Shown: in pieces, positions 3,201 to 63,872 of the stretch
Layout: each line of letters starts with the position of its first letter
Numbering within the stretch: position 1 is the first letter of the stretch
Origin: Podarcis muralis
Lineage: Eukaryota
Assembly: GCF_964188315.1 (NCBI RefSeq)
Contig: NC_135671.1
Coordinates: forward strand, 10,106,001 to 10,170,000
Direction of reading: 5' to 3'
Length of the DNA stretch: 64,000 nt
Notes under the pieces: model-generated
Told to the model about the DNA's origin: nothing
The model's input: only the letters and a program-made list of their open reading frames with translations
The model's database searches: none
Made by a program: the position numbers and the translations under genes

Positions 3201-3682
3201 CAGCCCTCCGCGCAGCAGCCGACGCGGGGACTAAATGCCTTAACAGCCCGGGGCGCGTCACGAGCGCTCAGGGGCGACCGGGCGACCACTTATTTAACTA
3301 CCGCGATCGACCGGAACCACACCGGCGATCCACCTGTCGATCGCAGGTCAGCCAGGACACTTCCGACTTTGCAATTCTACTTTTCGGGACCCTCCTAAGT
3401 ACGGAAGGAAACCCGACGCGACCCACGGAGAGTGGACATCTGAGCAAAACAAAGTTGCGCCGGAGTTCTTGGAGAGGGGCGCAAGGGCGGCTGTGCCAGC
3501 AGGGTGCTGCAATCTGGGGGGAGAGGGGGGGACTGTCCCGGTCCCCCCTCCATGCCCCCTTCTTCCACCGCTGTTACCTCGAATCCCAGCCAGGAATACG
3601 GAGACAGCACGTCGTAGAAACACTCCACCAGTTTCTTGCTGCTGCTGCTGCTGCGCAAACCTTGGCGCGCCGCCGCCGCCAT
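249..3682 (-). CDS. GSTK1: Glutathione S-transferase kappa 1(-like), coding exons 1-2 (partial; gene continues beyond the left edge)
   Basis: Exon 1 CDS 3578-3682 gives MAAAARQGLRSSSSSKKLVECFYDVLSPYSWLGFE, donor GTAAC. Exon 2 249-330 (82 nt) gives VLCRYRPIWNMELRFRPVFLGGIMHST(G), AG acceptor and GTAAG donor. FYDVLSPYSWLGFE is the kappa-class catalytic Ser motif. Confidence 0.9.
711..1410 (-). mobile_element. Sauria SINE interrupted by a MITE
   Basis: AAGGTAAAGG tail to ...CGCCACCCGCGTCCC head; continuous once 913-1251 is removed. Confidence 0.9.
913..1249. mobile_element. Tc1/mariner-superfamily (Tc2-like) MITE nested in a Sauria SINE
   Basis: TIRs CCGTATTTTTCGCCCTACAGGACGCAC / GTGCGTCCTATGGGGCGAAAAATACAG; TA target duplication at 911-912 and 1250-1251. 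Confidence 0.85.
1572..2032. mobile_element. hAT (Charlie-type) non-autonomous transposon
   Basis: CAGGGGTC...GACCCCTG termini; 8-bp TSD ATCTAGAC at 1564-1571 and 2033-2040. Confidence 0.88.
2562..2809. mobile_element. hAT non-autonomous transposon
   Basis: CAGGGGTCAGCAAAC / GTTTGCCTACCCATG termini; 8-bp TSD GGTAAGAC. Confidence 0.8.
2900..3022 (-). mobile_element. tRNA-derived SINE fragment
   Basis: Reverse complement has TAGCTCAGCTGG A-box-like and GGTTCGATCC B-box-like motifs followed by non-tRNA sequence. Confidence 0.5.
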
Positions 3683-32500: not shown

Positions 32501-35500
32501 CTGCAAGTTACTCTGAGAGAGTCCAAGAGCATATCCAGGGATATTGCATTAACTTGAAGAGGAAAGCAGTAAGAAGTGCTGAATTGCTGAATTTCACTCT
32601 TTCAGTGAACAGGTGCTTGAGTACAGAATTCTAGGATGGACTGAGAAGCTTGCAACTTGGGTTTATGAACCAGCATATTATGCCGAAAAGCTACTGGAAG
32701 GCATCGGTGCAAGTGCGGTGAAATTTCTATGCTAACTGGCAGAGCCCAGTTTCAAGTCTGGGTGAGAAAATTCTGGGACTGTCTGAACAATTCAGACCAT
32801 TTAGTTAAAATAATTTACCTTCAAAGATTAGGTTTAGAGTTGCAAGCCTCACCGCAGTCACAGAGAACAAAATTCACTGTGACAAATACATAGTAAGCTC
32901 ACTCTGCATTTCCTCTTTGTGGTCTCCTTAATCCTTATTCTTCATAAATTCGCTTAAAATCAGCTTCTGGGTTTTTGACATGCATTTGTGACTGAACGGA
33001 TTAGCAGCCGGAATCGCTTTGGTTTCATGCTAACCCTAGTCTGGAGGCAAGGAGATCGCAAGGAAAGGAAACAGGTTCTGGTCTTGTGGTGGGAGGGTAG
33101 CTTTTACTGCTCACTTATACTCAAAGCCTGGGGATTTGCTCCTATCCAACACCAGAGGCAAAAAGGAGCTGGGGAGATTTCAGAGAGCCATGGTCTGCAA
33201 AGGCACACTGACCACTTTGTTCAAATGGCTTTCTATACCTGTACAAAGTGTTCCATAATGAGACGTGCTCCAGAATAGATAAGAGTATATACACTTTGTT
33301 TGCCTTTCACTTTAGGTATTATTTACTTGTAATAAGTGAAGTTTTGTGATAACTGGTTAAGCGATTAACCTTCAGCTGACCAAATGATATACCATACATA
33401 AATTAAAGTGAAAACACAAGAGTTTATTAATGTTACGCTTAAGCTTTTTAAGCAAATAAGAGTTGTACCCATTTCAGGAAGATGTCAACTCTATTCCAAC
33501 AGGTAGAGTCTTTAAGTTTTAAAAGGAGTTTACACCTCAATAATCAAACAGAGGGGAAACGTTAGGCAGGAAAGAAGCAGAATGCTTACTTACTGTGTAT
33601 GGCAAAAAAGTAATGAGCATCATACATGCCTAGGAGAGAAAGAATTCAACATGTGAGAAAAAATGGCTCCTCGGCAGGTAAATGCAAGTCAGTGCCCCTT
33701 CTCACATTATCTGCATGGTATGGAAGATGATGCAGTTTGGCTCCTTTCTGCTTAGCAATGAAATGTCAGAAGCCCAGGACTATACTCGGGGGCCTAAGCT
33801 GTAGCCTCTTCCCACTCTAACATTGCCCCAGTTTTAGGGAGGAATGACACTAGCATGGAAAGGGAGCCAGAGAACGTCCAAAGACGTTCAAGCAGTTCAC
33901 ATTGAACAAAGTTAATGCAGTAAATGTTGCCTATGGAACCTCTACAACCCTCAGGCTTTATCCAACCCAGGCATGGTAGTACAAAGAAATGCAGAAGAAC
34001 TCATTGGAAGACATCAGTGGCTTCCCACAACCATCTGTTTGTAGCCTCAGGCCATTTTCCTAAGTTACGCTCAAATCTGTTTCTTGTGTTAGATCACAAC
34101 AATTTTAGGGAACAATCAAACAGGTTGTTCTCTCGGCAAAAGACATGCCGAAATGAATGGCAGCTTTATAGGGTTGACATATTTCAAGAAGTAAAAATCC
34201 AGACACAAAAAGTTGTTGTCAAACACCCAGACATTTTGCCTATTTCCCAAAATTCTCCCCAGACGCTAATTCCGTCATTGGAATCCTGGACTTGCCCAGG
34301 AAAATCCAGAGGTATGGCAACCCTAGAAAGGCAGAAAGACTCCTGGATAGCTCCCTTACAGTTGAAGAAGACTTGGACAGAAGGTAAAAAGGTAAAAGAC
34401 CCCGGATGGTTAAGTCCAATCAAAGGAGACTATGGGGTTGCAATGCTCATCTCACTTTCAGGCCGAGGGAGCTGGCATTTGTCCAGACAGCTTTCCGGGT
34501 CATGTGGTCAGCATGACTAAACCACTTCTGGTGCAATGGAACACGTGACGGAAACCAAAGCGCACGGAGACACCATTTACCTTCCTGCCGCAGCTCTACC
34601 TATTTATCTACTTGCACTGGCGTGCTTTCAAACTGCAAGGTTGGCAGGAGCTGGGACAGAGCAATGGGAGCTCACCCTGTCACGGGGATTCAAACAGCCA
34701 ACCTTCTGATCGGCAAGCCCAAGAGGCTCAGTGGTTTAGACCACAGCGCCACCCACTCTGCTAAAGGCAGGACTCCTGGACAGCTCCCATACATTTGAAG
34801 AAGACTTGAACAGAATGTCCCTCAAGATCACACAATTCTGTATGTTATACACTGGGACAAGTTAAAACCTCCAACTGCTTCGGGTAATTATTAAACTATT
34901 CATATTTTGCATTTCACCGTCAACAAATGAAGCAAAAAGCATTACACATATATCCAGGGTGCAGTTATGATGTCCTGGGTGACTCAAACACTAATATTAA
35001 ACAGTGGTGCAGTAAAATGGATAGAAAGCATCATAGCCCATTGCTGGTCTAGATAATTTTGTTTTTTGAAACATTAGGATACTGAAATTTGTAAGAAGGA
35101 GATTCAGAACTGTTCCGTCTTGGTACTGATAATATTCAAGGCTGGGAATATCTTGATCTTTACACCAGCGTGTCTTTTTTTAACGGACCTTTATTTCACT
35201 CACCAAATTTAGAAGGGCAAGCACATCATCTATGAGTTCGATCACCTGAAAAAGTCTGAGGGGGAGAGAGAACAAAAGCCATTAATAATTTGGCCCTGGT
35301 AAAATACTCAGAAAGTTCTGACTGACAGACACGTTCACTGAACAAGTCTTAATTTTGATGATAGTATCACTTGGGAAGACTTATGCAGTGTCCCTCCATT
35401 CTATGATGAGTCTACTCATATTCAGCAGTAAGGGAGAAATGATTGTGAAACTCAGAAACTTCCCTTTCTGAAGCACCACTGACAAAGATCAGGCAAGCAG

Positions 35501-38500
35501 GCCTGATGAACCAGGCAAATCTGCTCACCAGCTTGCTAGCCTCTTTGGTAAGTCAGCCAACAGGACGATTCCCTTCCCCATCCCTCAAGGTCTTACACCT
35601 ACTGTGGCTTAAAGAAACTAAGAGATGGAAGATTTTCTTATCTTATCAAATAAGCTCCCACCTCTCCCTTGACACATGCAAAGGGCTCAGCTTATTATCT
35701 CACTTCGGCTGGTCATAACTCCAGTGTGTTGAGGACTGGATAAGACAGGAAAAGAAAGGAGTTTCTCTCCACTGTTTCATATCTTCTTTATACACTAGCA
35801 GAAAGGAGAAAGAACTCTGCCTTCCCTGCAAGCCCTCTGTGAAAGTCACAGGACTTTTTTCGGGGGGAGAAGGTAGGTGGGGGAAGAGGCTAATAAGCCA
35901 AACTACTTATTTGTAGATCCTTCACAAACCACCAATTAAATGGGATTTTGAGAACAGCCAAGCTTGTAAAGAGTGCTCCTGAGCCAGTAACAATTCTATC
36001 CAGGTAATAACAACAATTTTATTATTTGTATACCCGGCCCATCTGACTAGGTTGCCTCAGCTATTTTGAGTGGCTTTCAACACATATAAAATCATAATAA
36101 AACATTAAGCATTAAAATACTTCTGCAAGATGCAGCAGAAGCTTACAAAAGTTGTTTCTTCTCCTAAGGCCACAAATGGCAAACAGATGTATGTGCAGAC
36201 TGGTGGTAACCTAATGAAATTGTCTGGCAGGACAAAAAAGAAAAAAGGACTTCTTTTAACCAAATGCAATTCATTTTTTCTGATGTGGAAAATAGGGGGC
36301 TGGACTTGATTGACTGTCGGTTTGATTAAATAGGTAAAGGTAAAGGGACCCCTGACCATTAGTTCCAGTCGTGACCAACTCTGGGGTTGCGGCACTCATC
36401 TCGCTTTACTGGCCGATGGAGCCGGCGTACAGCTTCTAGGTCATGTGGCCAGTATGACTAAGCCGCTTCTGGCGAACCAGAGCAGCGCACGGAAACGCCG
36501 TTTACCTTCCCACCAGAGTGGTACCTATTTATCTACTTGCACTTTGACGTGCTTTCGAACTGCTAGGTTGGCAGGAGCAGGGACCGAGCAATGGGAGCTC
36601 ACCCCGTTGTGGGGATTCAAACCACCGACCTTCTGATCGGCAAGTCCTAGGCTCTGTGGTTTTAGAGGTCTTCTTATGTTCTCTTGAGGATTCGTTTTTC
36701 CAAGGCTAGTTTAATGTGTTCTTAGCGGCAGTGAATTCAACTGGCATGGCAGGGCTCAACACAACCTGCAAGCTCTGTTACAGGATGCTTTCCCTCCTTG
36801 GACAAGCTACATGCTGCAATTCGCAAGAAGGGCTGGTGTGTGTGTGTACCTTTTCCAACACATTCCTAAATGCATACCTGACATGAGCTGCCCAAGCAAC
36901 TGTTACTATTAAAAAGGTCATCAGGTAAACGGCAATTTTGGTGGCTAGGAGCTGCTGAACACTTTCACCCAGTTTCTGAAATAAAACACAGCATTTGACA
37001 AATAAGTGCCTGTTATTCATTACAGAAGTTAGTGAAACATGACATGCTGTACTTGTTTTTCACACAAGCAAAAGCACAAAGAGAAAGCGTGTTGCAAAAC
37101 GAACCTCAAGGTGCAGACTGTGAATTTAAAACCAGAACAAAAAACAAATCTAATCCATTCTTCCCCCTGCTCTCTGAAGACACAAAACCTGAGAATGAAA
37201 CTCCCTGAATAAAGACAAGTCTAGCTGGTGGACACACTGAATTCTTTATGGTGCCTGGTAGTTAAATAGGAAGCAGTATAGATGTCTTCTGCTCTTTCTA
37301 ACCTGGAACTGCTACCCTGTGAACTGATCAGGAAAGCAGTGCTGCTAGGTCAAAAGCAAAATATGGAGACTGTGCTGTTCCTATCCTGGTGGTTGCATGC
37401 AAAATAACAGGAAACAATAAGAGGCCAGTCAAAAGAGACCCACTTGCCACCTGGGTGAGGGAAAGTGGGGTAGGGGAAACTGAAGACGAGGGGGCTGGAT
37501 GTGGTCTGTGGGGCACCTATTGACAGAAACTTTAAAATGAACCTGAAACGGAAGTTCTAATTTCTTTTAGTACTCAGAGCTAAATGTCCTCTATACTGGA
37601 ACAGCCATACTGGAGATTCAAAGTGCAATCTAAATTAGTAAACCGAAATACAATCAAAAATACATTTTATACGAAATATACCGCCTATAATTATTAGTAG
37701 TAGTAGTATTATTATACACAATACCTGATCTGGGTGTATCTTTGTATGGGCCACGGGCAAAATCTGCAAAAGAAGCAGCATTTGTAACAAGCAGTGAAGA
37801 AAAAACAAAACACCAAAGAGCATAAAAGGGACTTTTGGGGAAGGAGGAAATGATCTCTAAAGAGTTTTTGGACGCATAAGCAAAATGGGTATTTCCCAAC
37901 ATGCATTCCTGACCCTGACCTTGCTCACAATCACAGTGATTAAAGCATGGTAGAAGGGTGGTGTGTCCCCCCCCCCCCCAATCTTTTCAACCTATCCTTT
38001 ATTTTACTATTAAAATAGTACCACTTTACTGAGTGGTGCTTACGCTGAAGTAAATAAAGATGTTATTATGTAAAGGTATGCAGCCACAGCGAAGAGAGGG
38101 TTGGACATGGGCTAGCGGTGTGGGCGCAAATCTCCTTTCAGCCACAGCGCTCATTGGTTGACCTCACCCACCCACCTCAGGAGTGTTGTGAGCAGTGCTT
38201 TTTTTCCTTAAAAAATGTTTCGGGGTATTCTCATTTTGACTCAAGAAAACCACCATTTTATAGTTCAAATCAGGAAAAATAAATACAGTAAATGGAGAAA
38301 AGTACAAAGATTCACAAAATGTTTAGGGGTATGCGTATCCCGGCCTGCATCCCCCCCAGAAAAAAGCACTGGTTGTGAGACTAAAATGGGAAAACCCGCA
38401 TGTTTGAATCTCTTGGAGGCAGAGCAGGGTCTCTGCCCCCTGGAGCAGAAGGGAGAAACTGAAACTGAGGTCCTAATCTGATTTGAGGATTGTGAACACA

Positions 38501-39868
38501 GCATGAATGAAAGGTGACAAGTCCCCCCCCCCCCCAAAAAATAAGCAGTTTTCCCAAGTGGTTAGAGCTGACCAAGGCCTAGGGAGCCCACAGTTCAGTC
38601 ATTCTCTCTGGGGGCTCATCCACACTTCGGTTTTGTCCTGCCACTTTTTCCTTACAGCTTAATCAGAGCAAATGTTCTGCGGGTTGACATTTGCTCCGAT
38701 TCAGGGCTGTGTGCATTGTTGAGTTGTTGTTTTTATTTTGATTACATATTTTGTGCTTTTATATTCTAATTCTGTCCTGTGAACCGCCTTGAGACCTCCG
38801 GGTATAGGGCTGTATATCAATTCAATAAATAAATAAAATAAACAAAAAGTGGAGTTGTGCTGGGGATAGCGGCAGGGCAAACGGGAAAAGGGCTCTCAAG
38901 ACCCCTGGTTTCTAGGCACAGGTATGAGGCAAAGTGTGATCCAAGAGCCCTCGCAGGGTTGTTGTGTAGTAGAAACAGGAGAGGGGAAGAATCTCAAGAG
39001 GCTTGGGCAACCCAGCCAGATGCAACAACATTTACTACTATTTTCCTTAGACAGGGTAGAAACGTAAGGAATAAAGCAATATTATTATTGCCTGTGTATT
39101 GCAGAGGTGGCTGCGTGATGAGATTCTGAAAGAGTTTGTGACCCAGGTTCTAATCCAGCCATGCTGCTTCACCTTCAAAAAGGAAGAGGCGTTGGGGTAT
39201 AGTTTGGGGGTTTTCATACCTTTATTTTATATCTGGTTACGTAGGAATTGTTCAGTCTGATTGTGTATTTTTGGGTGTTTCGTTTATTGTTTATGATTGC
39301 TTTTGTTACGCTGCAATTGTGCATTTTTTCCATGTTGCATGGTCTGAACTGATACCACAGCTCATTCCGTAGAGCATGAGACTCTTAGTCCCAGGGTCGT
39401 GGGTTCGAGCCCCACTGGGGGAAGAATTTGTGCATTGCGGGGGGTTGGGCTAGATGACCCTTGGGGTCCCTTTTATAAATCTAACTTTGGAAAGGTGGCA
39501 TACCATAAAAATTATGTGTGTAGGTATGTTAACAAATAAATAAAAAGGAAGAGGCGCTGCTGCAGAAACCTCGCCCGTTCCTGCTCCCAGCCTGTGTAGC
39601 GCAGCAGGCGGGACTCCGACAGGTGCAGCTCCACCCGCCCTCCCGCAGCAAGGGGCGCGCCTGCTTCGCCCTCGCCTGCCTGGGCTGCCCGGCCGCCCTC
39701 CGAGAGACTCACCATGACGGTGGCGATGATGGAGAGCAGGGCGTCGCTATAGGCCAGCAGGCGCTGCGAGGCCTGGGTGCCGCCGCCCAGCTCCCCGCCG
39801 CCAGGCCTGCCCGGGCCGGGGGGCTTCGACGGAGAGACCACGGCGACGTAGTCCCCGGCTTCAGCCAT
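26505..39868 (-). CDS. TMEM175: Endosomal/lysosomal K+/H+ channel TMEM175, 10 coding exons, 497 aa
   Basis: Exons 39713-39868, 37725-37763, 36878-36975, 35204-35255, 33594-33629, 32231-32314, 31237-31401, 30835-30913, 28965-29094 and 26505-27159, total 1494 nt in frame. Both repeat signatures are present (QRLLAYSDALLSIIATVM and ERVEAFSDGVYAIVATLLILDI). Candidate polyA signal on the minus strand at 24986-24991. Confidence 0.96.
27262..27487. mobile_element. Tigger-like MITE
   Basis: Same family as 15228 in the opposite orientation; TA ends. Confidence 0.82.
27890..28255 (+). mobile_element. Old L2 LINE 3' fragment
   Basis: GIPLCLTQKVQLVQNAAEQLL...LRDLLWLP...KFKALL resembles the L2 RT C-terminus. 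Confidence 0.7.
28260..28462. mobile_element. Tigger-like MITE
   Basis: TA-CAGTGGAACCTCGGGTT...AACCTGAGGTACCACTG. Confidence 0.75.
28695..28876. mobile_element. Tigger-like MITE
   Basis: CAGTGGTACCTTGGTTC / GAACCAAGGTACCACTG, TA TSD. Confidence 0.8.
29345..29645 (+). mobile_element. Non-LTR retrotransposon 3' end (clade uncertain)
   Basis: HC..Y...R..LI.PLL..FPG.S...LL.D.....VAKF remnant homologous to 60417; (GAT)n tail. Confidence 0.6.
30498..30663. mobile_element. Tc2-like MITE
   Basis: CCGTATTTTTCCATGT / ACATGGAAAAATACAG, TA TSD. Confidence 0.78.
31791..32114 (-). mobile_element. Sauria SINE
   Basis: Full length; TSD ATGTTCTCATATAAGG at 31778-31793 and 32115-32130. Confidence 0.9.
34381..34753 (-). 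mobile_element. Sauria SINE, second subfamily
   Basis: Diagnostic differences (TTTCAGGCCGAGGGAGC..TTTGTCC; GGAACACGTGACGGAAACC) shared with 59062. Confidence 0.82.
36331..36663 (-). mobile_element. Sauria SINE
   Basis: Colinear with the other copies; head slightly truncated. Confidence 0.88.
39356..39472 (+). mobile_element. tRNA-Lys-derived short SINE
   Basis: GTAGAGCATGAGACTCTTA..CCCAGGGTCGTGGGTTCGAGCCCCAC followed by a CTAGATGACC..GGTCCCTT tail; no intact acceptor stem. Confidence 0.65.
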
Positions 39869-40080
39869 CCCGCTCCTCGCATGCCGGGCGGGCCTCAAAG
39901 CAGAGCCCGCCCTCCCTCCTCGTCGCGGAGGCCGGCCGCCAACACCGCCCGCCTCCCCCGCCCAGGCCCGCCCCGCTCTCGGCGGCCTCGGCTTCGCGAG
40001 GAGGCGCTGCCCGGTTCCCTCCGGGGGCGGGAAATTCGAAAGGGAAAGACGCAAAGAAAAAAAACCCGCTCCTTAGATTC
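39570..40080. promoter_or_regulatory. CpG island over the TMEM175 promoter and exon 1
   Basis: GC/CpG-dense segment around the first coding exon. Confidence 0.7.
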
Positions 40081-48817: not shown

Positions 48818-49229
48818 CATAGACAATGAGGCCTATGAGGCACCGGCATATGAGGAGGTGGTGACTACTGGCTACTTATCGGGACCAACCATCTGGACCA
48901 TCACCTCCAGTCCAGGGACAACCCCAGTGGAGCCCCCTCCGTACAGCGTGGTCATTGAGCCTCCTGCCCACGGAGAGACTGTGGTCGAGGCGTTCAGTGT
49001 TTCGGTGGCACCAGGCACACGGCGTGCCTCAGAGGCAGATCTACAGTCCCGGTTCCGCCTCAGATTGCTCATGCCACCAAAACTGCAGCGATTTGTCTCG
49101 GATACCCATGAACTCAAAGGTGTTGAAGAGCGGGCAGAACGTCCGGAGCCCCTCACACCCCCTCCTGCTTATGAGAACGCGACTGTGGAGGAGGTCCTTG
49201 AAGAAGAATTTCAGCCCTCCAGGCTATGA
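48818..49229 (+). CDS. TMEM139: TMEM139-like (TMEM139/TMEM51 family) terminal coding exon; upstream transmembrane exon not located
   Basis: Polypyrimidine tract plus CAG acceptor at 48817, phase 2. Open to TGA at 49229: IDNEAYEAPAYEEVV...EPPPYSVVIEP...RRASE...EPLTPPPAYE. This resembles human TMEM139 DNEAFEVPVYEEAV / PPPYSTVVIP / RRMASE / EPLTPPPAYD as recalled. AATAAA at 49566 and 49671. Confidence 0.65.
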
Positions 49230-50680: not shown

Positions 50681-50716
50681 TTGCACCTCAAGGCAGCTCT
50701 CACTTGTTGCTTAGAG

Positions 50717-51694
50717 GTAAAGCACGCCGGGCACTTCCACTGCCTCCCGCAGTTTGGCCAAACTCATGCTGGTAGCTTCCACAACACTGTCCAACCATCT
50801 CGTCCTCTGTCGTCCCCTTCTCCTTGTGCCCTCCATCTTTCCCAACATCAGGGTCTTTTCCAGGTAGTCTTCTCTTCTCATGAGGTGGCTAAAGTATTGG
50901 AGCCTCAGCTTCATGATCTGTCCTTCCAATGAGCACTCAGGGCTGATTTCCTTCAGAATGGAGAGGTTTGATTTTCTTGCAGTCCATGGGACTCTCAAGA
51001 GTCTCCTCCAGCACCAGAATTCAAAAGCATAAATTCTTCGGCAATCAGCCTTCTTTATGGTCCAGTTCTCACTTCCATACATCACTACTGGGAAAACCAT
51101 AGCTTTAACTATATGGACCTTTGTTGGCAAGGTGAAGTAAAATCTCTCACTGCCTCCATTTCTTCCCCTTCTATTTGCCAGGAGGTGATGGGCCCAGTGA
51201 CCATGATCTTCTTTTTTTGATGTTGAGCTTCAGACCATATTTTGCGCTCTCCTCTTTCACCCTCATTAAAAGGTTCTTTAATTCCTCCTCACTTTCTGCC
51301 ATCCAGGTTATGTCATCTGCATATCTGAGGTTGTTGATATTTCTTCCGGCAATCTTAATTCCAGCTTGGGATTCATCCAGCCCAGCCTTTCGCATGATGA
51401 ATTCTGTATATAAGTTAAATAAGCAGGGAGACAAAATACAGCCTTGTCGTACTCCTTTCCCAATTTTGAACCAGTCAGTTGTTCCATATCCAGTTCTAAC
51501 TAGCTTCTTGTCCCACATAGAGATTTCTCAGGAGACAGATGAGGTGATCAGGCACTCCCATTTCTTTAAGAACTTGCCATAGTTTGCTGTGGTCGACACA
51601 GTCAAAGGCTTTTGCATAGTCAATGAAGCAGAAGTAGATGTCCTTCTGGAACTCTCAAGCTTTCTCCATAATCCAGCGCATGTTTGCAATTTGA
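50717..51694 (-). mobile_element. RTE-BovB LINE 3' fragment with an internal deletion
   Basis: FKIGKGVRQGCILSPCLFNLY, NINNLRYADD and [22 protein letters not shown]; frameshifted. Confidence 0.88.
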
Positions 51695-51939
51695 TATTGA
51701 TTATTAATTGGCTTGGAGCCAGATGGGCAAGGATCACAGAGGACTGCTTACAAAGAGCTTCTTAAGAGCCGTTATCACCCTTTGGACTTTGATTATTATG
51801 ATAAATGGTTATTAAGGCAGCAGCTCAGGTACAGAGTCACTCTTTATAGTTCCCTTCCATGCATGCTGAGTGAAAACCAGCCCTTGCCGATTTCTTCCTA
51901 AGTTATTCTCTTCCTGAAAACAACCTTCTGCCAGGTAAC

Positions 51940-53029
51940 ATGTCACGTAATGTCGCCCTGAAAGAGAAGAGATTCCTCTTCACGTCTGAGTCTGTTGCTG
52001 AGGGACATTCAGGTGAGTGAATGTGGGTTTCCTGTCCAGCAGTTTGGTGAATGCAAAATGTAACTTTCTAATAGCCTCTTCTGAGACCTCCAATTTCCGA
52101 AGGAATGGAAGAGAGTAAGCTTCCAACCATGAATATTTTAAATTCTTGCTCCATCCCCACCTGACGGCTCATGTGGCTTTCACTGGTCTTAATACAGCAG
52201 GTTTAGTGCTTGTTATGTTTGCTCAGTGATGGGTACAGTCATGCTTTGAATTTAAAAGCATAGCTGTCAACTTTCCCCTTTTCTTGCGAGGAATCCTATT
52301 CGGAATAAGGGAATTTCCCTTTAAAAAAAGGGAAATGTTGACAACTATGCTTTAAAAGTGCTATTTTCAATTATTTACAAGAGAGCCTGAAAGAACTGGA
52401 TGCATAATGCTCTAACAGTCAACTCAGCAAACCGGCGAATGCCTGATCTTCTCAGGAAAACACCAGAAGCTGCCCTATACAGTGGTACCTTGGAAGTTGA
52501 ACAGAATCCGTTCCAGAAGTCCGTTCGACTTCCAAAACGTTCAGGAACCAAGGTGCGGCTTCCGATTGGCTGCAGGAAGCTCCTGTAGCAAATCGGAAGC
52601 CGCATAAGCCACGTCAGACGTTCGGGTTCCAAGGAAGGTTCGCAAACTGGAACACTCACTTCTGGGTTTGAGGCGTTCTGGAGCCAAAACTTTAGACTCG
52701 CAAGGCGTTTGGGATCCAAGGTATGACTGTACTGAGTCAGACAATTGGTCCATCTAGCACAGTGTTGTCTACACTGACTGGCAGCAACTCCCCCCCCCCC
52801 CCCCGGATTTCAGGCACAGGTCTGTCCCAACCTACCTGGAGATGGTGGGGATTGAACCTGAAGCATTACGCATGCAAAGCAAGTGCTCTACCACTGAGGT
52901 ATGTACGTTCTCAAATGTCATCCCAGTGGTTTCTTTATATAACTGCTTTCTAGCAAACCCAGGTGGATGTTTGATGTACTTGTGGAGGGTATTGTGACCT
53001 CTGAAAAGCTCAGAAAAAAATGTTGCTTT

Positions 53030-53075
<46 letters not shown>

Positions 53076-56000
53076 AATGGCGACTCAGCTATACAGCTGC
53101 AAATAAAATGTTTTAAGTATGTTTTAAGTGCAGTATACAATGTGATACTAGCTGGTGATGATGAGCCTTATGGAAAATTCAATGGTTTTTTAAAAAACGC
53201 TTTTTTAATATATAAAAAAAGCATTTTCAGAACAAAAAAATTCCTTCCAGTAGCACCTTAAAGACCAACTAAGTTAGTTCTTGGTATGAGCTTTCGTGTG
53301 CATGCACACTTCTTCAGATACCAAAGAAGTATCTGAAGAAGTGTGCATGCACACGAAAGCTCATACCAAGAACTAACTTAGTTGGTCTTTAAGGTGCCAC
53401 TGGAAGGAATTTTTTTGTTTTGACTATGGCAGACCAACACGGCTACCTATCTGTAACATTTTCAGAACGTTTTTAATATGTGCATAGATTCCACCTGGAT
53501 TGGCTTCCAGGCCAACGAGTGCAACCTAGGCAGCCTGTTCTTATACAGTTGACAACTAAATGAATTATAGAAACCTGGCTTATTTTTGGTTTCTTTCCTT
53601 TCCACCCGTGTAGATAAACTGTGTGACCAGATCAGTGATGCTGTTCTTGATGCTCATATTAAGGTTGATCCAGATGCTAAGGTTGCTTGTGGTAAGTCTC
53701 ATCTATTTGCAGAGCAAATTACAGAGGGTTTGTGTTTTGTGTTTCGTTACACCTTTGCAGGGTTGTTGTTTTTTTAAGCGTGCAGTAAAAATGCAGGTGT
53801 TCGTTACTGAGGAAGAAATGGCCTTTCTCCAACGATAAGCTTTATTACCGGGAAAATAAATATTCCCTTTCCTCCTCCCAAGGTAATGCATCCATTGCCG
53901 CTTGAAGCACCTGGTGTACTGCAGCTGGGCAACTATTATTGGCATGTATTGGCCACTTCCTGTGTCAGCACAACTCCTCTGTCCGTTTCTGCACTATTTT
54001 GAACCTCTGTAACATCTATTTTTCTGACTATTTTAGTAGGTGAACAGCCAAAATGCTTATATTTATTTTTTAAACAATAAGGCGGGGGAGGGGGGGACTT
54101 AATATGGAGAACATCAGCAAAACTCCTCACTACTGTACAGCAGACTACCACTATTATATGTGTGTCCATTTGTGCAAGCTTCATTCTAGAGCCTAAGCTA
54201 TTCAACATTACCCAGAACTATAGCGCGTTGTCTGCCTAGTTTAATTATAAAGGGGAGGGAGTAGCAAAGAGGTGTTCCCCCTGTGTTGTAATTGTATCCC
54301 AAGTGGTTGCAAAGAGTCATCATAATTTAAACATTTCAAGCCCAGTGTCGGCTAAATTCTAGACAAAGATTCCACAGTGGACAGCAGGACCTTAAAGCTA
54401 AGGCCTCCATGCTACTAGGAATTAGGTGTTGGAGACAGTACACAACAAAAGGGCTAATGCTGAAATTGTTTTACCAATTGGCAAACAGAAGCTTTATAGC
54501 ACAATTCTATACACATCCATTAAGGGATGCGGGTGGCACTGTGGGTTAAACCACAGAGCCTAGGACTTGCCGATCAGAAGGTCGGCGGTTCGATCCCCGC
54601 AATGGGGTGAGCTCCCGTTGCTCTGTCCCTGCTCCTGCCAACCTAGCAGTTCGAAAGCACGTCAAAGTGCAAGTAGATAAATAGGTACCACTCCGGTGGG
54701 AAGGTAAACGGCGTTTCCGTGCGCTGCTCTGGTTCGTCTGAAGCAGCTTAGTCATGCTGGCCACATGACCTGGAAGCTGTATGCCGGCTCCCTCGGCCTA
54801 TACAGCGAGATGAACGCCGCAACCCAAGAGTCGGTCACGACTGGACCTAATGGTCAGGGGTCCCTTTACCTTTATACACATCCATTAAAACAAAAACAAA
54901 ATTGTATACTCCTGGGCAGTGCTGTTTTTCTCGAAAAAGAGGTGCCAGAACTCACCATAAACACCGTCCTCATTCTCTTCAAATGGCAATGGCGCCCACT
55001 TGAGAGGTGCTAGAACTGAGCTCTGGCAAGTTTTGGCTGAAAAAATAGCCCTGCTCCTGGGTAAGGGGATATAGAATTATAGCTTTACAGTGCAATCTGA
55101 ACCATGCCTGCTCAGAAGTAAATTCAGTGGGACATACTCCTATGACACTGGGATTATAGGGTTGCCATATTTCAAAAAGTAAAAAAAAAGGACCCTACAC
55201 AAATTGTTGAAGACTCTGGAGTTCTTGAGAATTTTTTCTTTTAATGCCGCCTTTCGGAAATTCCCCCCGGGCATCAATTCAACCTTTGAAATCCTGTTAA
55301 TGTACAGGGAAATCAGGACACATGACAGCCCTATGAGATTAGAAGTGCCGCCTAAACTGTTTAATTATTGAACCAATTAAAATTTGCAGGACTAGTAATA
55401 ACAGCAGAACCTACACCCTTCAATTTCATGTAGAAGTTGTGTCAGTATCATTTACAAGGGCTGGAAACTTACAGCCAAGGGGGCATATCAAAACATGGCA
55501 GGCAATATTGACCACAGACGATTAGCTATTGATTATTAATTGGCTTGGAGCCAGACGGGCAAGGATCACAGAGGACTGCTTACAAAGAGCTTCTTAAGAG
55601 CCGTTATAACCCCTTGGACTTTGATTATTATGATACATGGTTATTAAGGCAGCTGTTCAGGTACAGAGTCACTCTTTATAGTTCCCTTCCATGCATGCTG
55701 AGTGAAAACCAGCCCTTGCCAATTTCTTCCTAAGTTATTCTCTTCCTGAAAACAACTTTTTGTCAGGTAACATGTCACATAACGTTCCACCTTTGAAATC
55801 CCATTAATGTCCAGAGAAATCAGGACGCATGACAGCCTTATGAGATTAGAAGGGCAGCCTAAACTGTTTAATTATCGAACCAATTAAAATTTGCAGAACC
55901 TACGCCCTTCAAAATGCAAATGCCCCCCAAAATGGAAAGGTCTTTACTTGCAAGTCGTCACCATTACAAAGAAGAATGTTCCATTTGGACAAGGCCCTGC

Positions 56001-56164
56001 TCTTAGTGGATATGTGCCTAATTTCAGGTATACAGGACAAGGCCTTAACTGGATGCCTTAAAGATACAAGCAGGGACATAAGTGCACACTGTCTATATTG
56101 GGGGAAAGAAATATTTGGTGTGTGTGTATCTATCTATCTATCTATCATCTATCTATCATCTATC

Positions 56165-56212
<48 letters not shown>

Positions 56213-59200
56213 CACTATCTATCTCACTATCTATCTCACTATATAACTAGCTTTCTTGAATTATGTTTCTGCAGAATGTGTGGCCAAAACTGGGATGATC
56301 TTGCTATGTGGTGAAATTACATCCAAAGCTATCATTGATTACCAGCAAGTAGTGAGAGACACCCTCCAGAAGATTGGTTATGATGACTCTTCCAAAGGTG
56401 GGTTGTGGTAACTTGAATAAGCCACTGGAGATAGACCAAGTATGGATTCTGTGTAAGAGGAAACAAGTACCGTAGGTGCTCATCAGAGCCTCTTGGTGAC
56501 TATAATGTTATTTTACCTAGAATCTACTCATTTAACAAGCTTCACTAACTGCTGTGAAAGGTATTGTGTGAAATGAGAAGTTTGAAGCAGCTTCTACATG
56601 TTATAAGGAGCACCGTCTCTTTGGAACAGGCATAGGCAAACTCCGCCTCGCCCCCGATGTTTGGGACTACAACTCCCATCATCCTCTGGCTATTTAATGA
56701 GCATTCGTTCTGAATTGTTTCTGGGAAGATTCAACGATGTTGTGTCGAAACAAGTGTTAGCCCACAGTTTCCAGTGCATTTAGTCATCGTTTCCCTTTCC
56801 GTTTTTTGCAAAAAGATATTTTATGGTAGCAGGTTTGTTGCACAAGATCTCACCATCAATTTAAATTACACAACCTGAATATATTGGAATGTGATTGAAT
56901 CCCACTCAAAATTAGTGACAGCCTGTGCAGTACAATGTGTCTAAATGGTTAAAAGGAGATTGATTGCAACAATTGCTCCTCCTATGACTCAGTGAGTTTT
57001 ATTTATTTTCCCAGCAATTATGATGTTTAGGTGAAAATGGTAAATGCATTGGCCACCATCAAACATTGAGTTAAGTGTAATGAAATCCAGATGTAAAAGA
57101 TACAGAGATGCTGAATTAGAATTAAAATTGAGTTGAAAACCATGCAAAACTCCACCACAAAAGGAATTTAATGTTCAGTTCACCTGGAAATCATACGAAC
57201 TACTTGCAGGTGTCCTTCAGAGATTTTTGGAATTAATTCAGTGATTAGTTAATTTGAATTAATTCATTCCAAGCACTGGTGTGATGTGCCAACCAGGCCT
57301 CTGCGTCCAAGCCAGTTGCCCGTTATTGTGGCTTGCTATTCACTTCACAGGGTTGGATTACAAGACTTGCACTGTGCTGGTAGCCCTGGAGCAGCAGTGT
57401 CATGAGATCAAACAAGCCATCACCGAGGGGAAGACTGGGGATGATATTGGAGCTGGAGACCAGGTAACACGCTTTTGTTTGGGTTCCCACCCTCTTCTGT
57501 GAAGCACTTCAGGCCCCTACATTTTCTGTCTGTGACCCCATCTGCATTATACATTTAAGGCAGTATCATACTACAGTGGTACCTCGGGTTAAGAACTTAA
57601 TTCGTTCCTGAGGTTTGTACTTAACCTGAAACTGTTCTTAACCTGAAGCACCACTTTAGCTAATGGGGCCTCCCGCTGCTGCCGCGCCGCCGGAACACGA
57701 TTTCTGTTCTCATCCTGAAGCAAAGTTCTTAACCTGAAGCACTATTTCTGGGTTAGTGGAGTGTGTAACCTGAAGCATATGTAACCTGAAGCGTATGTAA
57801 CCCGAGGTACCACTGTACTTTAAGCAGTCATGGCTTCCCCCAGAGAATCCTGGGAACTATCTTTTCTTAAGGGTGCTGAAAGTTGTTAGGAGAACCTTCT
57901 ATCCTCCTCACTGACCTCAAATTTCCAGAGTTCTCTGGAAGGGCGATTGATTCTTCAGCACTCTGGGAATTGTAGCTGTCTCTTGGAAATTGTAGCTCAA
58001 TTTTAGAGGGAAAGAAGGGGAAGAGGTTAGCTGCCTCACTTCTACCTGTGCATGTGTTGCTTTACAGTGGTAACTCTGGTTGCGAACGGGATCCGTCCCA
58101 GAGGCCCATTCACAACATGAAAGGAAAGCAACCCGTGTCTGTGCACGCACAGGTTGTGATTCGCCGCTTCTGCGCATGACGTCATTTTCTGCGTCTGCGC
58201 ATGCGCGAGCGGCGAAACCCGGAAGTAACCCTCTCCGGTACTTCCGAGTCGCCGCAGGACGCAACCTGAAAAAACGTAACATGAAGCAAACGTAACGAGA
58301 AGTATGACTGTATTGCTGATCTGCACTCGAAGTTGTAGAAGAAGCCAATATGCTTATGGTAAATATAGCCATGTGATTTCTAACGCAGGGCTTGATGTTT
58401 GGTTACGCCACCGATGAAACTGAGGAGTGCATGCCCCTAACTATCCTTCTTGCGCACAAACTTAACGGGAAGATTAAATCCCTGGAGAGAAATGGAGTTC
58501 TGCCCTGGCTTCGACCCGATGGGAAAACACAGGTTGGTATATACCAAGGACTGTCAAATATGATGAGCAGAGCTGAAGTCTGAAATAAGTGAGACATGCT
58601 TATGTCCCATTGAAATTATCCATTTGGAGGCTCATGTGAACATGGTCAAAGCTATGTTGAAGCTAGAATATTGTAAACAATCAACATATGGATACAGTTC
58701 ATCCCTGGCCTAGTGTAGAGAACTGGCAGAGCCAAGTGGTATCAAGCTTTTGCTGGGCTCTACAGCTTCACCCAACAAACTGTTCGTCTGTTTGAATCAT
58801 ACCCTATGAACATAAATCAAGCCCTGCTGGGTCAGGCCAGAGGTCCATCCTCCACTTCAGCATCCTGTTCTTAAAGCGGCCAAGGCAACTTCCTGTGTCC
58901 CAGCTAAAGTCACAGTGATCTGTGTGACTGCTGCTTTCTTTTCTGCAGGATAGAATGCTGATCCGATATCCTACCTATAGATTGGGTTTAATAAACATTG
59001 CTTATCCTTTAGCTTCCACAGTCCATCAATCCTGACTACTACTGTAGTAAGCTAACTGGTTAGGTAAAGGTAAAAGTAAAGTAGCCTTGGACAGTTAATT
59101 CCAGTCAAAGGCAACTATGGGGTTGCGGTGCTCATCTTGCTTTCAGGCCAAGGGAGCCAGTGTTTGTCCACAGACAGCTTTCCGGGTCATGTGGCCAGCA

Positions 59201-62200
59201 TGACTAAACTGCTTCTGGCGCAACAGAACACTGTGACAGAAACCAGAGCGCACAGAAACGCCGTTTACCTCCCTGCCACAGCGGTATCTATTTATCTACT
59301 TGCACTGGTATGCTTTCGAACTGCTAGGTTGGCAGGAGCTGGACAGAGCAACAGGAGCTCACCCTGTCACAGGGATTTGAACCGCTGCCCTTCCAATCGG
59401 CAAGCCCAAGAGGCTCAGTGTGCTGGTCCGGGGGGAGGTTACCGTGGGGCGAGGTCCAGGACCTGAGTCGAGGGTCGGCAGCCAGTCCTCCACGGGCGAA
59501 GTGGGGTCCACAGTGAGGAGCTGGGCAAGGACAGGCACTCTGGGGAAACCGGACTGGGTGCTGGCCGAAACAGCTCTTCAACGACGTTGCTCCTGCAATT
59601 TGGGACCGGGCTGACTGGCCTTTATCTTCTCTGAGGCCAGGGGCAGTCCCGGCCCCCAGGAGACCCGCCTCTCCTGGCCTTAAGGCGAGCACTCCTCCTG
59701 GGAGAAACCAGTTCCCTCCACCTCTCTGCCCTGAGCCTCTGCAGTTCAGGAGAGGCTGAAGGGTTACTGGGCCCAGGGGGAGACTCACCTGTAGGCACCG
59801 AGTCCTCAACCACCTCCGGAGCCAGAGTGGATTCACCTGGTGCCTGCTCCTGAGGATCCAGCACAGGTGCAGGCGCTTCAGAATCAAGGCCCTGCCCCAG
59901 TTCAGCCGGCCCTGGAGGCAGGGACTCCTGTGCAGGCTGGGATTCCTCCGGTTCATCCTCTGAATGGGATTCCCAGGCCATCACACTCAGTGGTTTAGAC
60001 CACAGCGCCACCTGCGTCCCCTTTGCTAGCTGGTTAGCAGCAGGTGGATGAATCTTTCTTGATATACCAGGATAGCATTCTCTGCACAATATTCCAAGTA
60101 GTCGGTGGCTACTGACCTTGATGGCTGTGTTCTTCCTTCCCTGCTGGAAGCAGTATTTTACTGAATATCAGTTTCTGGAAACTACAGGATGGGAGAGTGC
60201 TCTTGGTCCTCAGATCCTGCTTGCAGGAATTTGGTTAGCGACTGTGAGAACAGGATGCTGGACCAGATGGGTCATTGGCTGGATCCAGACACTCTTATTA
60301 TCTTCTTATTGTCTATACCGATTCATGTCTGCATTGCAGTAAAAGGAAAATTAAAGTGACTAATAGAAAGGTTCTATTGGGAGTTCGGTGGAACTTACTT
60401 TTTAGGATCAGGATGCTGATCTTGCTCCCTATATAAAGATCTCAGGGACGAGACCATCACGCCGCTCCTATCTGCCATCCCGGGCCGCTCTTGTGAAGCC
60501 AAATTGTTCTCACTCTTAGCCGACCAGAACAGCTCGACAACAGAGAAGGTTGCCAAATTTATTGAGAGAGCAATGAGACTGAGAGCTGCTATCTGAATGA
60601 CATCAGCGTCGTCACCCGGATTCCTCGCCTAGGATCTTATTACTTATTACTATTATCATTATGTTTTATTATTATTATTTTATTACCTCTGCTAAGTTTT
60701 AAGTACTGAGATTATTAATTTATCTGCATCTGGTTATTATTATCTTTCTCCCTGTCCTGACCATCCCTCCGAGGTTATATTTATAATCTTTCAATTTGGC
60801 TGGCCTATTTACTTAATCGACCTGGAACAATCTATCAGAGAAAAGGCCGCCGCCCATGGGACAGAGGGTCATTGATGAATGATAATCCAGCTTCTACCTA
60901 GGGTTTTAATAGGTCATAAGATTTTATGGTAACTATATTTGTAATGTATTTTTTGTCGGTGTTCGTCCTTTGATGCTATGGCCTGTCAGCTACGCAAATA
61001 AAGTCTATTGATTGATTGATCAGGATGCAATAAAATAATGCAACATAAGATAGCGGAAGATAGATGAAAAACAAAACAGTAGCTCAGGCTTGTTCAGCAG
61101 AGTTGTATAAAGTGGCGGAAGCAAAAAATATAACTGTTTAAACCTACGGCCAATCTTGTAGGTCACGATGGAATACCGAGATGTCGGCGGTGCGCTGGAG
61201 CCCATCCGGGTGCACACCTTGGTCATTTCTGTACAACACGCTCCTGGGGTGCCGTTGCAGAAAATACAGAAAGAGCTGATGGACAAAGTTGTGAAAGAAG
61301 TGGTTCCAGCGAAATACCTGGATGAAAACACAGTCTATCACCTCCTGCCGAGTAAAGCCTTTCTAGCAGGTGGTCCTAAGGTATTGTAACCTCCAAACCT
61401 CTAGATATACAATAATGAGAGAGAGAGAGAAAGCATGAATCTGACTGGTTTTTTATTTACCCTGCCTCTTTCTATGGGGAAACTGCTGTTTGCCACTGAA
61501 TCAGAACAAATGTCAATCTGCGGGGGGGGGGGGGGGACATTTGCCAAAGCTAGTAAATGAGATAGAACACAACCCCAATGCAACAAAGTACTGCAAGGTT
61601 ACCAGGCTATTGCTTGATTTAAATCTTAAATTTCTACCCTTGTTTGTAGTTTCCCTTTAACCTGAGGCTGCTTAAAAAAGACATTTGTGCTCCAAACAGT
61701 TCGTGCGCGTGTGATACCACTGTTGTAGTGGAATCCTATACATGCCTCCTCAAAAGTGTGCCCTGTTGATTTATGTTTACACCTAGATAAGTGGGCATGG
61801 GATTGCAATCCCGGTGCCAGGCTTTTTACACTGCAATGACATATTGAAGCAGTTATGATCTTGAGAGATGAATTTGACACTCTTATTGTTAGCAAAGTAA
61901 ACATCCTGGTGATTTTTTTTATTTACTGTATTACTACTCTATAAGACTCACTTTTTCCCTCCTGAAAAGTAAGGGGAAATGTGTGTGCGTATTATAGAGC
62001 GAATGCAGGCTGTGCAGCTATCCCAGAAGCCAGAACAGGAAGAGGGATTGCTGCTTTCACTGCGCAGCGATCCCTCTTGCTGTTCTGGCTTCTGAGATTC
62101 AGAATATTTTTCTTCTTGTTTTCCTCCTCCAAAAACTAGGTGCGTCTTGTGGTCTGGTGCGTCTTATAGAGCGAAAAATACAGTATTTAAAAAATGTATT

Positions 62201-63872
62201 TCTTTTCTTTTCAGGCTGATGCTGGCCTGACTGGCAGAAAGATCATTGTGGATACCTATGGAGGCTGGGGTGCTCATGGAGGGGGTGCTTTTTCAGGGAA
62301 AGATCCCTCCAAAGTTGATCGTTCAGGAGCCTATGCAGCTCGCTGGGTGGCAAAGTCGCTGGTGAAAGCAGGCCTTTGCAGGAGAGTATTGGTGCAGGTA
62401 AGAGGGGGCCAGTGGAGCCTTGGACCAAATGTGGGGGAATTGCACAACAGAGATGAAACCCAGTACGTTTGGAGGAAAGCTTTTATGCTGAGTGCTGCTT
62501 GATTAAAAACTGCTTGAAACAATTCTGCACTGCGGGTAACCTTAGGTGGTGTACACACTGCTGTTTACTCTGCATCCAGTGAGCTCTCACCAGTCGTTTG
62601 GGAAGCGGTAAAAGTTAAAGGTAAAGGGACCCCTGACCATTAGGTCCAGTCATGGCCGACTCTGGGGTTGCGGCACTCATCTCGCTTTATTGGCTGAGGG
62701 AGCCGGCGTACAGCTTCCGGGTCATGTGGCCAGCATGACTAAGCCGCTTCTGGCGAACCAGAGCAGCGCATGGAAACGCCGTTTACCTTCCCACTAGAGC
62801 AGTACCTATTTATCTACTTGCACTTTGACGTGCTTTCAAACTGCTAGGTTGGCAGGAGCAGGGACCGAGCAACGGGCGCTCACCCCGTCACAGAGATTTG
62901 AACTGCCGACCTTCTGATCGGCAAGCCCTAGGCTCTGTGGTTTAACCCACATCGCCACCTGGTACAGCCATTCATATCTATCCTGTTGTTTCTTACTAAG
63001 TGCTGCTATTCTGATCTGTTGTTCCCAAAACCAAATTTGATCTGAGCTGAGAAAAAGCATGACCTAATGCTGTTTTAAGCCAGCAACGTGTGCACAGCCT
63101 AAGTCTCGTTAGAGGAGATAGTGAAAAACTGTCCTAGGCTGTCGTTATTGAGTAGCACCAAATCTTTCCCTTGATAGAGTTTGCTTGAAATATTCTAAGA
63201 ACTGTTTGCAACTTTGCTCCCCTTGGATTTTTCTATAGCTGTTACTGATTCTCTATTTGTGAATCAAGGTTATCTTCCAGGCAGCATCCTTAGTCAATGG
63301 GAGCCATTGCGATGTTACAAATGCTGCATGTATTGTGGAAATCTTTTCAACTGGGTGATAAACAACAGGGGTTAATTGCATTCATAAAATGTATTAATTT
63401 TATGGGGGTGTGGGTACCTAAGTACATAACTGCTGTGCCTCATGTTGGTACTATGGATAGCACAGATTATACCAGTGTTTCCTCAAATCCCCTAATTACT
63501 AAGGGATCTCTTTTCTGAATGAAACTTGCGAGGGATGCTTCACACTTGCATCCAAAGTGGTTTAAAAAGAGCCAGTGTGGTGTGGTGTGGTGGAGAGAAA
63601 GTGTTGGACTTAGACAAGGGCAACCCTGGTTCAGGTATCCACTGATAAAGCAACCAGGAACAGATCCCAAGCTGTAATGCTATCAGTTCATATGAACTCA
63701 AATACTCTTCAGCTACAGCGAACTTCTATATCCTTCAGCTGTCTTACGCGATTGGATTGAGTCACCCACTGGCCATCTCGGTGTTCCATTACGGTACTTC
63801 GGACAGATCAGAAGATGAGCTGCTGGATATCATTCAGAAGAACTTTGACCTTCGCCTTGGGCCAATAATAAG
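51940..63872 (+). CDS. S-adenosylmethionine synthetase (MAT), divergent MAT2A-like paralogue, coding exons 1-8 (last exon beyond the window)
   Basis: Exons 51940-52012, 53614-53691, 56275-56397, 57351-57463, 58389-58532, 61162-61380, 62215-62397 and 63739-63872. Internal exon lengths 78/123/113/144/219/183/134 match the vertebrate MAT1A/MAT2A layout as recalled. Motifs [25 protein letters not shown] and GGGAFSGKD are present. All junctions are GT-AG and in frame. Confidence 0.93.
52259..52349. mobile_element. Short MITE (hAT-like)
   Basis: CATAGCTGTCAAC / GTTGACAACTATG inverted termini. Confidence 0.6.
52480..52729. mobile_element. Tigger-like MITE
   Basis: TA-CAGTGGTACCTTGG...CCAAGGTATGACTG-TA. 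Confidence 0.78.
53033..53073. repeat. (AAT)n microsatellite
   Basis: Direct read. Confidence 0.95.
53281..53324 (-). ncRNA. Minimal type I hammerhead ribozyme motif (Penelope-like), antisense in MAT intron 1
   Basis: Reverse complement TTGGTAT-CTGAAGA-A-GTGTGCATGCACAC-GAAAGCTC-ATACCAA, 7-bp helix I. Confidence 0.65.
53329..53366 (+). ncRNA. Minimal type I hammerhead ribozyme motif (Penelope-like), sense in MAT intron 1
   Basis: GTAT-CTGAAGA-A-GTGTGCATGCACAC-GAAAGCTC-ATAC, 4-bp helix I. Confidence 0.6.
54524..54872 (+). mobile_element. Sauria SINE, full length
   Basis: 16-bp TSD TATACACATCCATTAA at 54508-54523 and 54873-54888. Confidence 0.92.
55157..55333. mobile_element. hAT MITE
   Basis: TAGGGTTGCCAT / ATGACAGCCCTA termini; near-perfect 8-bp TSD TGGGATTA / TGAGATTA. 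Confidence 0.65.
55527..55785 (+). repeat. Duplicate of the MAT 5' region (51695-51953) inside intron 2
   Basis: 259 bp, 12 mismatches by manual count (about 95% identity); includes the splice acceptor and ATG. Confidence 0.92.
56108..56240. repeat. (TATC)n compound microsatellite just upstream of MAT exon 3
   Basis: Direct read. Confidence 0.95.
57574..57815. mobile_element. Tigger-like MITE
   Basis: Same family as 15228; TA TSD. Confidence 0.85.
58065..58310. mobile_element. Tigger-like MITE
   Basis: Same family as 10674; TA ends. Confidence 0.75.
59062..60020 (-). mobile_element. Sauria SINE (second subfamily) split by a solo LTR
   Basis: SINE runs 59062-59418 and resumes at 59986-60020. 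Confidence 0.88.
59419..59985 (-). mobile_element. Solo LTR (567 bp, Gypsy/ERV-type) containing an ORF
   Basis: TGTG...CACA ends; 5-bp TSD CTCAG at 59414-59418 and 59986-59990; ATAAA TATA-like motif at the ORF stop. Confidence 0.85.
60417..61017 (+). mobile_element. Non-LTR retrotransposon 3' end (clade uncertain) in MAT intron 5
   Basis: [23 protein letters not shown]...[12 protein letters not shown]; about 430-bp 3' UTR; (ATTG)n tail; 11-bp TSD GATCAGGATGC. Confidence 0.8.
61926..62183. mobile_element. Tc2-like MITE
   Basis: TA-CTGTATT...AAAAATACAG-TA; related to 913-1249. Confidence 0.75.
62611..62960 (-). mobile_element. Sauria SINE
   Basis: Colinear with the other copies. Confidence 0.88.

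Follow-up and report, generated by a model that had tools for sequence, protein, structure and literature searches.

A probable squamate orthologue of a third catalytic vertebrate methionine adenosyltransferase gene beside TMEM175

The locus described here raises the question of whether some vertebrates carry a methionine adenosyltransferase (MAT, or SAM synthetase; EC 2.5.1.6) gene in addition to MAT1A and MAT2A and, if so, what kind of enzyme it would encode. The gene lies on the plus strand at positions 51940-63872 of a 64,000-nucleotide stretch of Podarcis muralis DNA (contig NC_135671.1, positions 10,106,001 to 10,170,000), which is called the window throughout and is free of N. A preliminary description, made from the letters of the DNA alone, had presented it as an intact, in-frame MAT gene and as a separate ancient paralogue that was lost in mammals. 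PMC6710175 assigns two catalytic MAT genes to mammals. Our analysis indicates that the locus is very probably the squamate orthologue of a third catalytic vertebrate MAT gene, intact over exons 1-8, maintained by selection and belonging to a clade apart from MAT1A and MAT2A. This third MAT is already known as a gene, being annotated by RefSeq in birds and turtles and having a fish relative that was named in 2012, and it is uncharacterised as an enzyme. A full-text literature search returned no paper on the sauropsid gene, its mammalian loss or its enzymology. The gene itself is less new than the preliminary description implied.

Structure, relatives and expression of the gene

Eight MAT exons, with the borders and lengths given in Table 1, join in a single reading frame with consistent phases and no stop codon, every acceptor being AG and every donor GT. 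Human MAT1A and MAT2A share these lengths. Exon 8 stops 128 nt short of the window's end and exon 9 lies beyond base 64000, so that the intact frame proposed in the preliminary description holds for exons 1-8. The window gene was compared exon by exon throughout, and ratios of nonsynonymous to synonymous substitution (dN/dS) were summed over exons. An exon-by-exon search recovered the Pfam domains PF00438, PF02772 and PF02773 in order, exons 2-3 matching the N-terminal, exons 5-6 the middle and exons 7-8 the C-terminal S-AdoMet_synt domain; by themselves exons 1 and 4 gave no match, being too short or too divergent. All three domains were recovered in the full-length orthologues of turtle, goose and sturgeon. 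Exon 6 aligns to human MAT2A without gaps at residues 184-256, residues 2-61 of exon 7 do so at 258-317, and exon 6 scores 76.8 bits against human MAT1A and 76.8 bits against human MAT2A. The N-terminus encoded by exon 1 has the length and pattern of bird MSIHTAKKEKRFLF and turtle MSSNTSKKEKIFLF, while exon 2 is 80-92% identical to the bird and turtle orthologues and exon 3 is 82-90% identical to the orthologues. Together the window exons hold 355 full codons and part of the 356th, and a goose-like exon 9, of 103 nt, would bring the protein to 389 residues.

Relatives of the gene were found by several searches. A word search with exon 6 returned exon-sized open reading frames (ORFs) at 85, 79 and 77% identity, the last of which sits on a 16.9-kb bird-like contig (L001) that carries exons 2-9 of an orthologue, exon 9 being intact and ending in KKLVY followed by a stop. 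The same exon searched against a representative library of 1.84 billion proteins yielded fragments for the most part, none of the matches being a named vertebrate protein, and a profile built from a protist protein (P0034) together with exon rows returned only stramenopile MATs. The short rows of exons 1, 3, 4 and 8 were misplaced by MAFFT and were dropped from the alignment. A profile made from exon rows (A6) led to named full-length proteins of turtles, birds and sturgeons. The turtle proteins are 389-residue entries called "S-adenosylmethionine synthase-like" (Terrapene, Malaclemys and Trachemys), the bird proteins form one cluster of 207 sequences that includes tinamou, kiwi, goose, falcon and passerines, and the sturgeon proteins have 395 residues. 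RefSeq examples are XP_027600961.1 (Pipra filicauda), XP_013043695.1 (Anser cygnoides) and XP_026519118.1 (Terrapene carolina triunguis).

Exon-wise comparison of the window gene ranked turtle and bird proteins first (73-95% identity per exon), sturgeon second (66-95%) and MAT1A-like and MAT2A-like proteins behind them (55-93%), together with invertebrate MATs. Identity across exons 2-8 is 85% between window and turtle, 83-84% between window and birds and 89-91% between turtle and birds. The window, turtle and goose sequences are each about 77-78% identical to sturgeon, which fits a squamate orthologue without rate acceleration. Seven changes at otherwise invariant sites are confined to the window, and all of them are conservative. 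With the bird and turtle synthase-like proteins of RefSeq the window gene shares the nine-exon layout (eight exons being seen in the window), GHSDK, Cys114, HLLPS, QLSYAI, DLRLG and the gene order on the TMEM175 side. It differs from them at positions 248/249, which are Lys and Ala in the window, Glu and Lys in birds and Glu and Val in turtles, and at position 257, which is Ala in the window and Gly in turtles. Differences of this kind are ordinary between species.

The records in the bird cluster (that of protein P0336) are named inconsistently, as METK1 synthase, METK2 synthase, isoform type-1-like, isoform type-2 or synthase-like. Expression studies in birds may consequently confuse the third MAT with MAT1A or MAT2A, and work on the methionine cycle in chicken, reptile and fish models has to reckon with a gene that can be misnamed METK1 or METK2.

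The full ORF was found without introns on seven goose contigs of 1.3-2.9 kb and on one sturgeon contig, which identifies these as transcripts. The goose complementary DNA (cDNA) divides into nine genomic exons, exon 9 being intact, with junctions exactly as the window exon lengths predict; aligned to the window, it matches exactly the eight called exons, starting at 51961. Intron 8 of the goose gene measures 3.8 kb. This coincidence of cDNA junctions and window exon borders validates the gene model. The counterparts in birds and sturgeon are transcribed, and their transcripts are spliced correctly. A retrocopy, which the preliminary description had also argued against, was ruled out by the identical intron positions of the goose gene and the window.

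Alignment of the window to contig L001 recovered only exons, with a dN of 0.092, a dS of about 1.6 (saturated) and a dN/dS of about 0.06. Exon 6 gave dN/dS values of 0.10 and 0.19 against its two closest copies. The dN/dS check suggested for this locus in the preliminary description therefore came out as strongly purifying, and the window gene is under strong purifying selection. These values bear on whether the gene could be a young pseudogene in this species, silent or broken outside the window in exon 9 or the promoter. The position of exon 9 beyond the window speaks for such a pseudogene, as do a long interspersed nuclear element (LINE) fragment about 200 bp upstream and the duplication of 265 bp around the start codon into intron 2. 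The eight exons with perfect splice sites and no stop, the private changes that are all conservative and the exon 6 dN/dS of 0.10-0.19 against the closest relatives speak against it, and we consider a pseudogene in the window species decidedly unlikely.

Position relative to MAT1A, MAT2A and the fish genes

In the full-length protein tree sturgeon, turtle and bird proteins form one clade (support 100/99), which is sister to a pair made up of a frog MAT1A-like and a teleost MAT2A-like sequence (96/92), with invertebrates outside. The stand-ins for MAT1A and MAT2A in the trees are a frog fragment and a chimeric teleost model rather than full-length named proteins; the frog fragment scores 401 bits against human MAT1A and 383 bits against human MAT2A, and the MAT2A identity of the teleost model was judged by eye. 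In the exon-6 tree the window groups with the two closest ORFs (96/89), this group is nested in a reptile and bird clade (100/100), and the latter falls within a 20-row clade that includes sturgeon and fish-like ORFs (99/97). Sequences of the MAT1A/MAT2A type form a separate clade (100/98), and the window gene is nested in neither MAT1A nor MAT2A. The turtle orthologue aligns to human MAT2A without gaps at about 76% identity by our own count and scores 667 bits against MAT2A and 653 bits against MAT1A. The exon-wise nearest relatives, the full-length backbone tree and the exon-6 tree all agree with the separate ancient paralogue that had been proposed.

A different origin, by recent squamate-specific duplication of MAT2A or MAT1A followed by fast divergence, could account for the exon layout that the gene shares with MAT1A and MAT2A. 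It is at odds with the same-signature orthologues in turtles, in all bird groups sampled and in sturgeon, with trees that split the clade from the MAT1A-like and MAT2A-like rows at 100/99, and with a gene order common to birds and a window lineage free of rate acceleration. We regard a recent duplicate as excluded. The third MAT is an ancient copy that occurs in the reptile window, birds, turtles and sturgeons; mammals are not known to have it.

The surroundings of the gene are consistent with this picture. Both Pipra and goose have TMEM175 on the minus strand, followed by the MAT-like gene and GAK on the plus strand. The window matches the birds on the TMEM175 side, and the GAK side would fall beyond it. 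The human 4p16.3 order CPLX1/GAK/TMEM175/DGKQ contains no MAT (PMC5451169), as the preliminary description had stated. Bird TMEM175-MAT-GAK order and human GAK/TMEM175 adjacency fit loss of the gene in the human line, and loss at the GAK/TMEM175 junction in mammals is the simplest reading. The reptilian gene would comprise nine exons at the MAT1A/MAT2A intron positions, head-to-head with TMEM175 and, in birds, with GAK downstream. From its paralogon and the shape of the tree we infer that the third MAT arose in the two rounds of vertebrate genome duplication (2R).

The fish side of the clade is less straightforward. Zebrafish mat2al is the fourth zebrafish MAT, not assignable to mat1a or mat2a, and is 73-75% identical to the human enzymes, with table and text in disagreement on which value belongs to MAT1A and which to MAT2A (PMC3410756). 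Its distance to the human enzymes is about the same as that of the third-MAT clade, and in the exon-6 tree the window gene falls together with the sturgeon protein and with fish-like exon-6 ORFs, which form the sister group in the trees. The sturgeon counterpart differs in having other neighbours, namely an RRM/CBFNT gene, a longin SNARE gene and a UBX gene (named by Pfam domain), and in keeping G248, Q256/G257 and DLRPG. Orthology of the window gene to zebrafish mat2al is plausible and, because the sturgeon gene has different neighbours, unproven; the fish gene may be an orthologue that was translocated or else an ohnologue of its own.

Under the second of these possibilities the gene of reptiles and birds and that of fish (of the sturgeon type, probably mat2al) would be two 2R ohnologues rather than one-to-one orthologues, and early vertebrates would have had four MATs paired as (MAT1A, MAT2A) and (4p16-type, fish-type). 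The placement of the sturgeon gene among the genes just named instead of between TMEM175 and GAK is what such an origin would produce, and a tree of the shape (A1,A2),(B1,B2) is what 2R predicts. A single translocation accounts for the sturgeon synteny equally well, P30S and S114C are common to the reptile/bird and fish groups, and no species was found with both types. We hold two ohnologues to be somewhat unlikely.

At the sturgeon loci (L014 and L015) the clade member adjoins the gene for a longin/synaptobrevin SNARE. Human MAT2A lies near VAMP8 and VAMP5 at 2p11.2. A linkage of MAT and VAMP genes may predate the vertebrate genome duplications.

Conserved and altered residues of the putative enzyme

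Residues are numbered as in human MAT2A, and positions were obtained by offset counting on gap-free alignments. All 16 ligand and catalytic residues are kept (H29, D31, E57, E70, Q113, D134, D179, K181, S247, F250, D258, R264, K265, K285, K289 and D291), exactly as listed in the preliminary description. The window gene resembles human MAT2A (PDB 2P02, 4NDN and 5A1I) and MAT1A (PDB 2OBV and 6SW5) in family, in its three domains and in its catalytic and ligand residues. It differs from them by P30S, S114C, a rewritten loop at 114-127, G248K, R249A, Q256K, G257A, Y287P/T288S and P357L, by an N-terminus six residues shorter and by its location, the third MAT sitting between TMEM175 and GAK (in birds) and not at 2p11 or 10q22. 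The divergent exon 7 string and the DLRLG of exon 8 are present as the preliminary description gave them; its argument from the KDPSK string is weak, as positions 287-288 vary widely among eukaryotic MATs.

Sites of the clade were compared with 200 other eukaryotic MATs, and those at least 90% conserved in the others and replaced in the clade were retained. This gave five sites: P30S, S114C, G248E (K in the window), A325S and P357L. Both P30S and S114C also occur in sturgeon and are therefore old changes. Where other MATs read GHPDK the window gene reads GHSDK, with His29 and Asp31 kept; HSDK is found in 16 of 16 clade members with an N-terminus and HPDK in 220 of 221 other MATs with the motif, Pro30 being conserved in 99% of the 200. 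In the gating loop the expected QSPDI is replaced by QCHEI, with Cys at position 114 in 18 of 19 clade members where 96% of the 200 other MATs have Ser. The loop is rewritten over 114-127 yet conserved within the clade (C114, E116, I117, G124 and K125). Reptiles and birds have lost the Gly at position 248. At position 249 no clade member examined has Arg; the window has Ala there, and its relatives carry Lys, Val or Thr. The preliminary description had left out three changes at positions with a described function, P30S, S114C and R249A.

Two of the changes fall at residues described in human MAT2A. Ser114 is the sole gating-loop residue that contacts the ATP analogue, via water, and the S114A mutant retains 2.5% of S-adenosylmethionine (SAM, also SAMe) synthesis with its tripolyphosphatase activity intact, while Arg249 contacts SAMe (PMC6850014). 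We propose that the product would be an active SAM synthetase subunit, on the grounds of conservation, selection and expression in birds and sturgeon, and that its kinetics, or its regulation and gating, would be unlike those of MAT1A and MAT2A in view of P30S, Cys114, the rewritten loop and the changes at 248/249.

The main rival to an active enzyme is a weakly active or inactive MAT-like subunit kept for a regulatory or scaffolding role, which might pair with MAT1A or MAT2A subunits in mixed dimers or have tripolyphosphatase activity only. P30S and S114C fall at top-conserved positions of the family, the effect of S114A on human MAT2A is of the kind such a subunit would display, with tripolyphosphate hydrolysis unchanged, and the clade has replaced the SAMe-contacting R249 by K, V, A or T. 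On the other side, none of the 16 ligands of metal, phosphate, methionine and adenine has been lost, Cys is a nearer substitute for Ser than Ala is, the active-site exons are under purifying selection as strong as the other exons, and positions 248-249 and 256-257 vary also in active MATs of other eukaryotes. We judge a weak or regulatory subunit improbable and favour the catalytic enzyme.

Several points weigh against the explanation as a whole. Exon 9 and the downstream neighbour fall outside the window, and intactness refers to exons 1-8. The deep topology rests on thin sampling, as the frog fragment and the chimeric teleost model stand for MAT1A and MAT2A. Finally, Ser114 is replaced and the SAMe-contacting Arg249 is Ala, so that normal activity is only an expectation.

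The long persistence of the change to Cys of Ser114, the gating-loop residue that positions ATP, at least since the split of ray-finned fish and tetrapods, together with P30S and the cysteines C58 and C68 next to Glu57 and Glu70 of the active site, might point to a functionally distinct enzyme that is thiol-dependent (sensitive to redox state or nitric oxide) or has unlike kinetics. This is a speculative proposal, which we think unlikely. If true, non-mammalian vertebrates would possess a regulated supply of SAM that was lost in mammals. The natural replacement of Ser114 by Cys in the loop and the altered GHPDK motif offer a natural experiment on gating-loop control of SAM synthesis. Textbook MAT biology and drug work on MAT2A rest on two catalytic genes, and most other vertebrates sampled have the third.

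Neighbouring genes and the region around the start codon

The coordinates of the exons and surrounding features are collected in Table 1.

Table 1 Features of the window, with positions counted from its first base
Feature	Position	Strand	Remarks
MAT exon 1	51940-52012	+	start codon, through first base of D31; GT donor
MAT exon 2	53614-53691	+	78 nt; completes D31; S-AdoMet_synt_N 4.6e-08
MAT exon 3	56275-56397	+	123 nt; E57, E70, clade cysteines C58 and C68; S-AdoMet_synt_N 2.2e-09
MAT exon 4	57351-57463	+	113 nt; gating loop Q113-G131, D134
MAT exon 5	58389-58532	+	144 nt; D179, K181; S-AdoMet_synt_M 3.4e-19
MAT exon 6	61162-61380	+	219 nt; S247, K248, A249, F250; most divergent of the exons
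MAT exon 7	62215-62397	+	183 nt; D258, R264, K265, K285, K289, D291; S-AdoMet_synt_C 3.2e-33
MAT exon 8	63739-63872	+	134 nt; reads DLRLG
265-bp segment	51689-51953	+	region 5' of ATG and first 14 nt of coding sequence
RTE/Bov-B-like LINE fragment	50711-51735	-	reverse-transcriptase Pfam match 51174-51518; blastx homology up to 51735
TMEM175	26505-40054	-	Pfam TMEM175 8.1e-12 at 26508-27131; head-to-head upstream of MAT
Myosin regulatory light chain exon	~16.6 kb	+	further upstream than TMEM175
ATP5ME-like exons (three)		-	further upstream than TMEM175

The segment of 265 bp that spans the MAT start codon has a second copy at 55521-55785 in intron 2, a direct duplicate with 94.7% identity; these are the only two copies in the window. 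The ATG of the intron 2 copy soon meets a stop. The 5' 47 bp of the segment overlap the minus-strand LINE reverse-transcriptase fragment, and the duplicate has the look of a promoter-proximal stretch duplicated locally, not of a transposon. With its end some 200 bp before the start codon, the LINE fragment may have displaced part of the MAT promoter. An origin of the start codon itself from the LINE was rejected on the N-terminus, which fits birds and turtles in length and pattern, and further on the end of reverse-transcriptase homology at 51735 and the absence of a reverse-transcriptase Pfam match over 51815-51946.

The neighbours TMEM175 and a myosin light chain gene, both named in the preliminary description, were borne out by a Pfam TMEM175 match and a myosin regulatory light chain exon. 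The extent of TMEM175 to about 40 kb, with the ORF at 39512-40054 as its first exon, was set by eye, this ORF being devoid of a Pfam match; on that basis the gap between TMEM175 and MAT is about 12 kb. The three ATP5ME-like exons were recognised by their likeness to the human protein.

Between TMEM175 and MAT an ORF of 123 residues rich in PPxY (48858-49226, plus strand) gave a weak match to the C-terminal part of Pfam TMEM51 (E 0.0076), and two bird loci have no gene called at this place. An uninterrupted LINE reverse-transcriptase ORF of 746 residues (21426-23666, minus strand; RVT_1 2.8e-37) possibly belongs to a young element. At about 3570-3640 on the minus strand lies a GSTK1-like (glutathione S-transferase kappa) first exon with the motif FYDVLSPYSWLGFEV, which matches PDB 1R4W and 1YZX at E ~6e-5.

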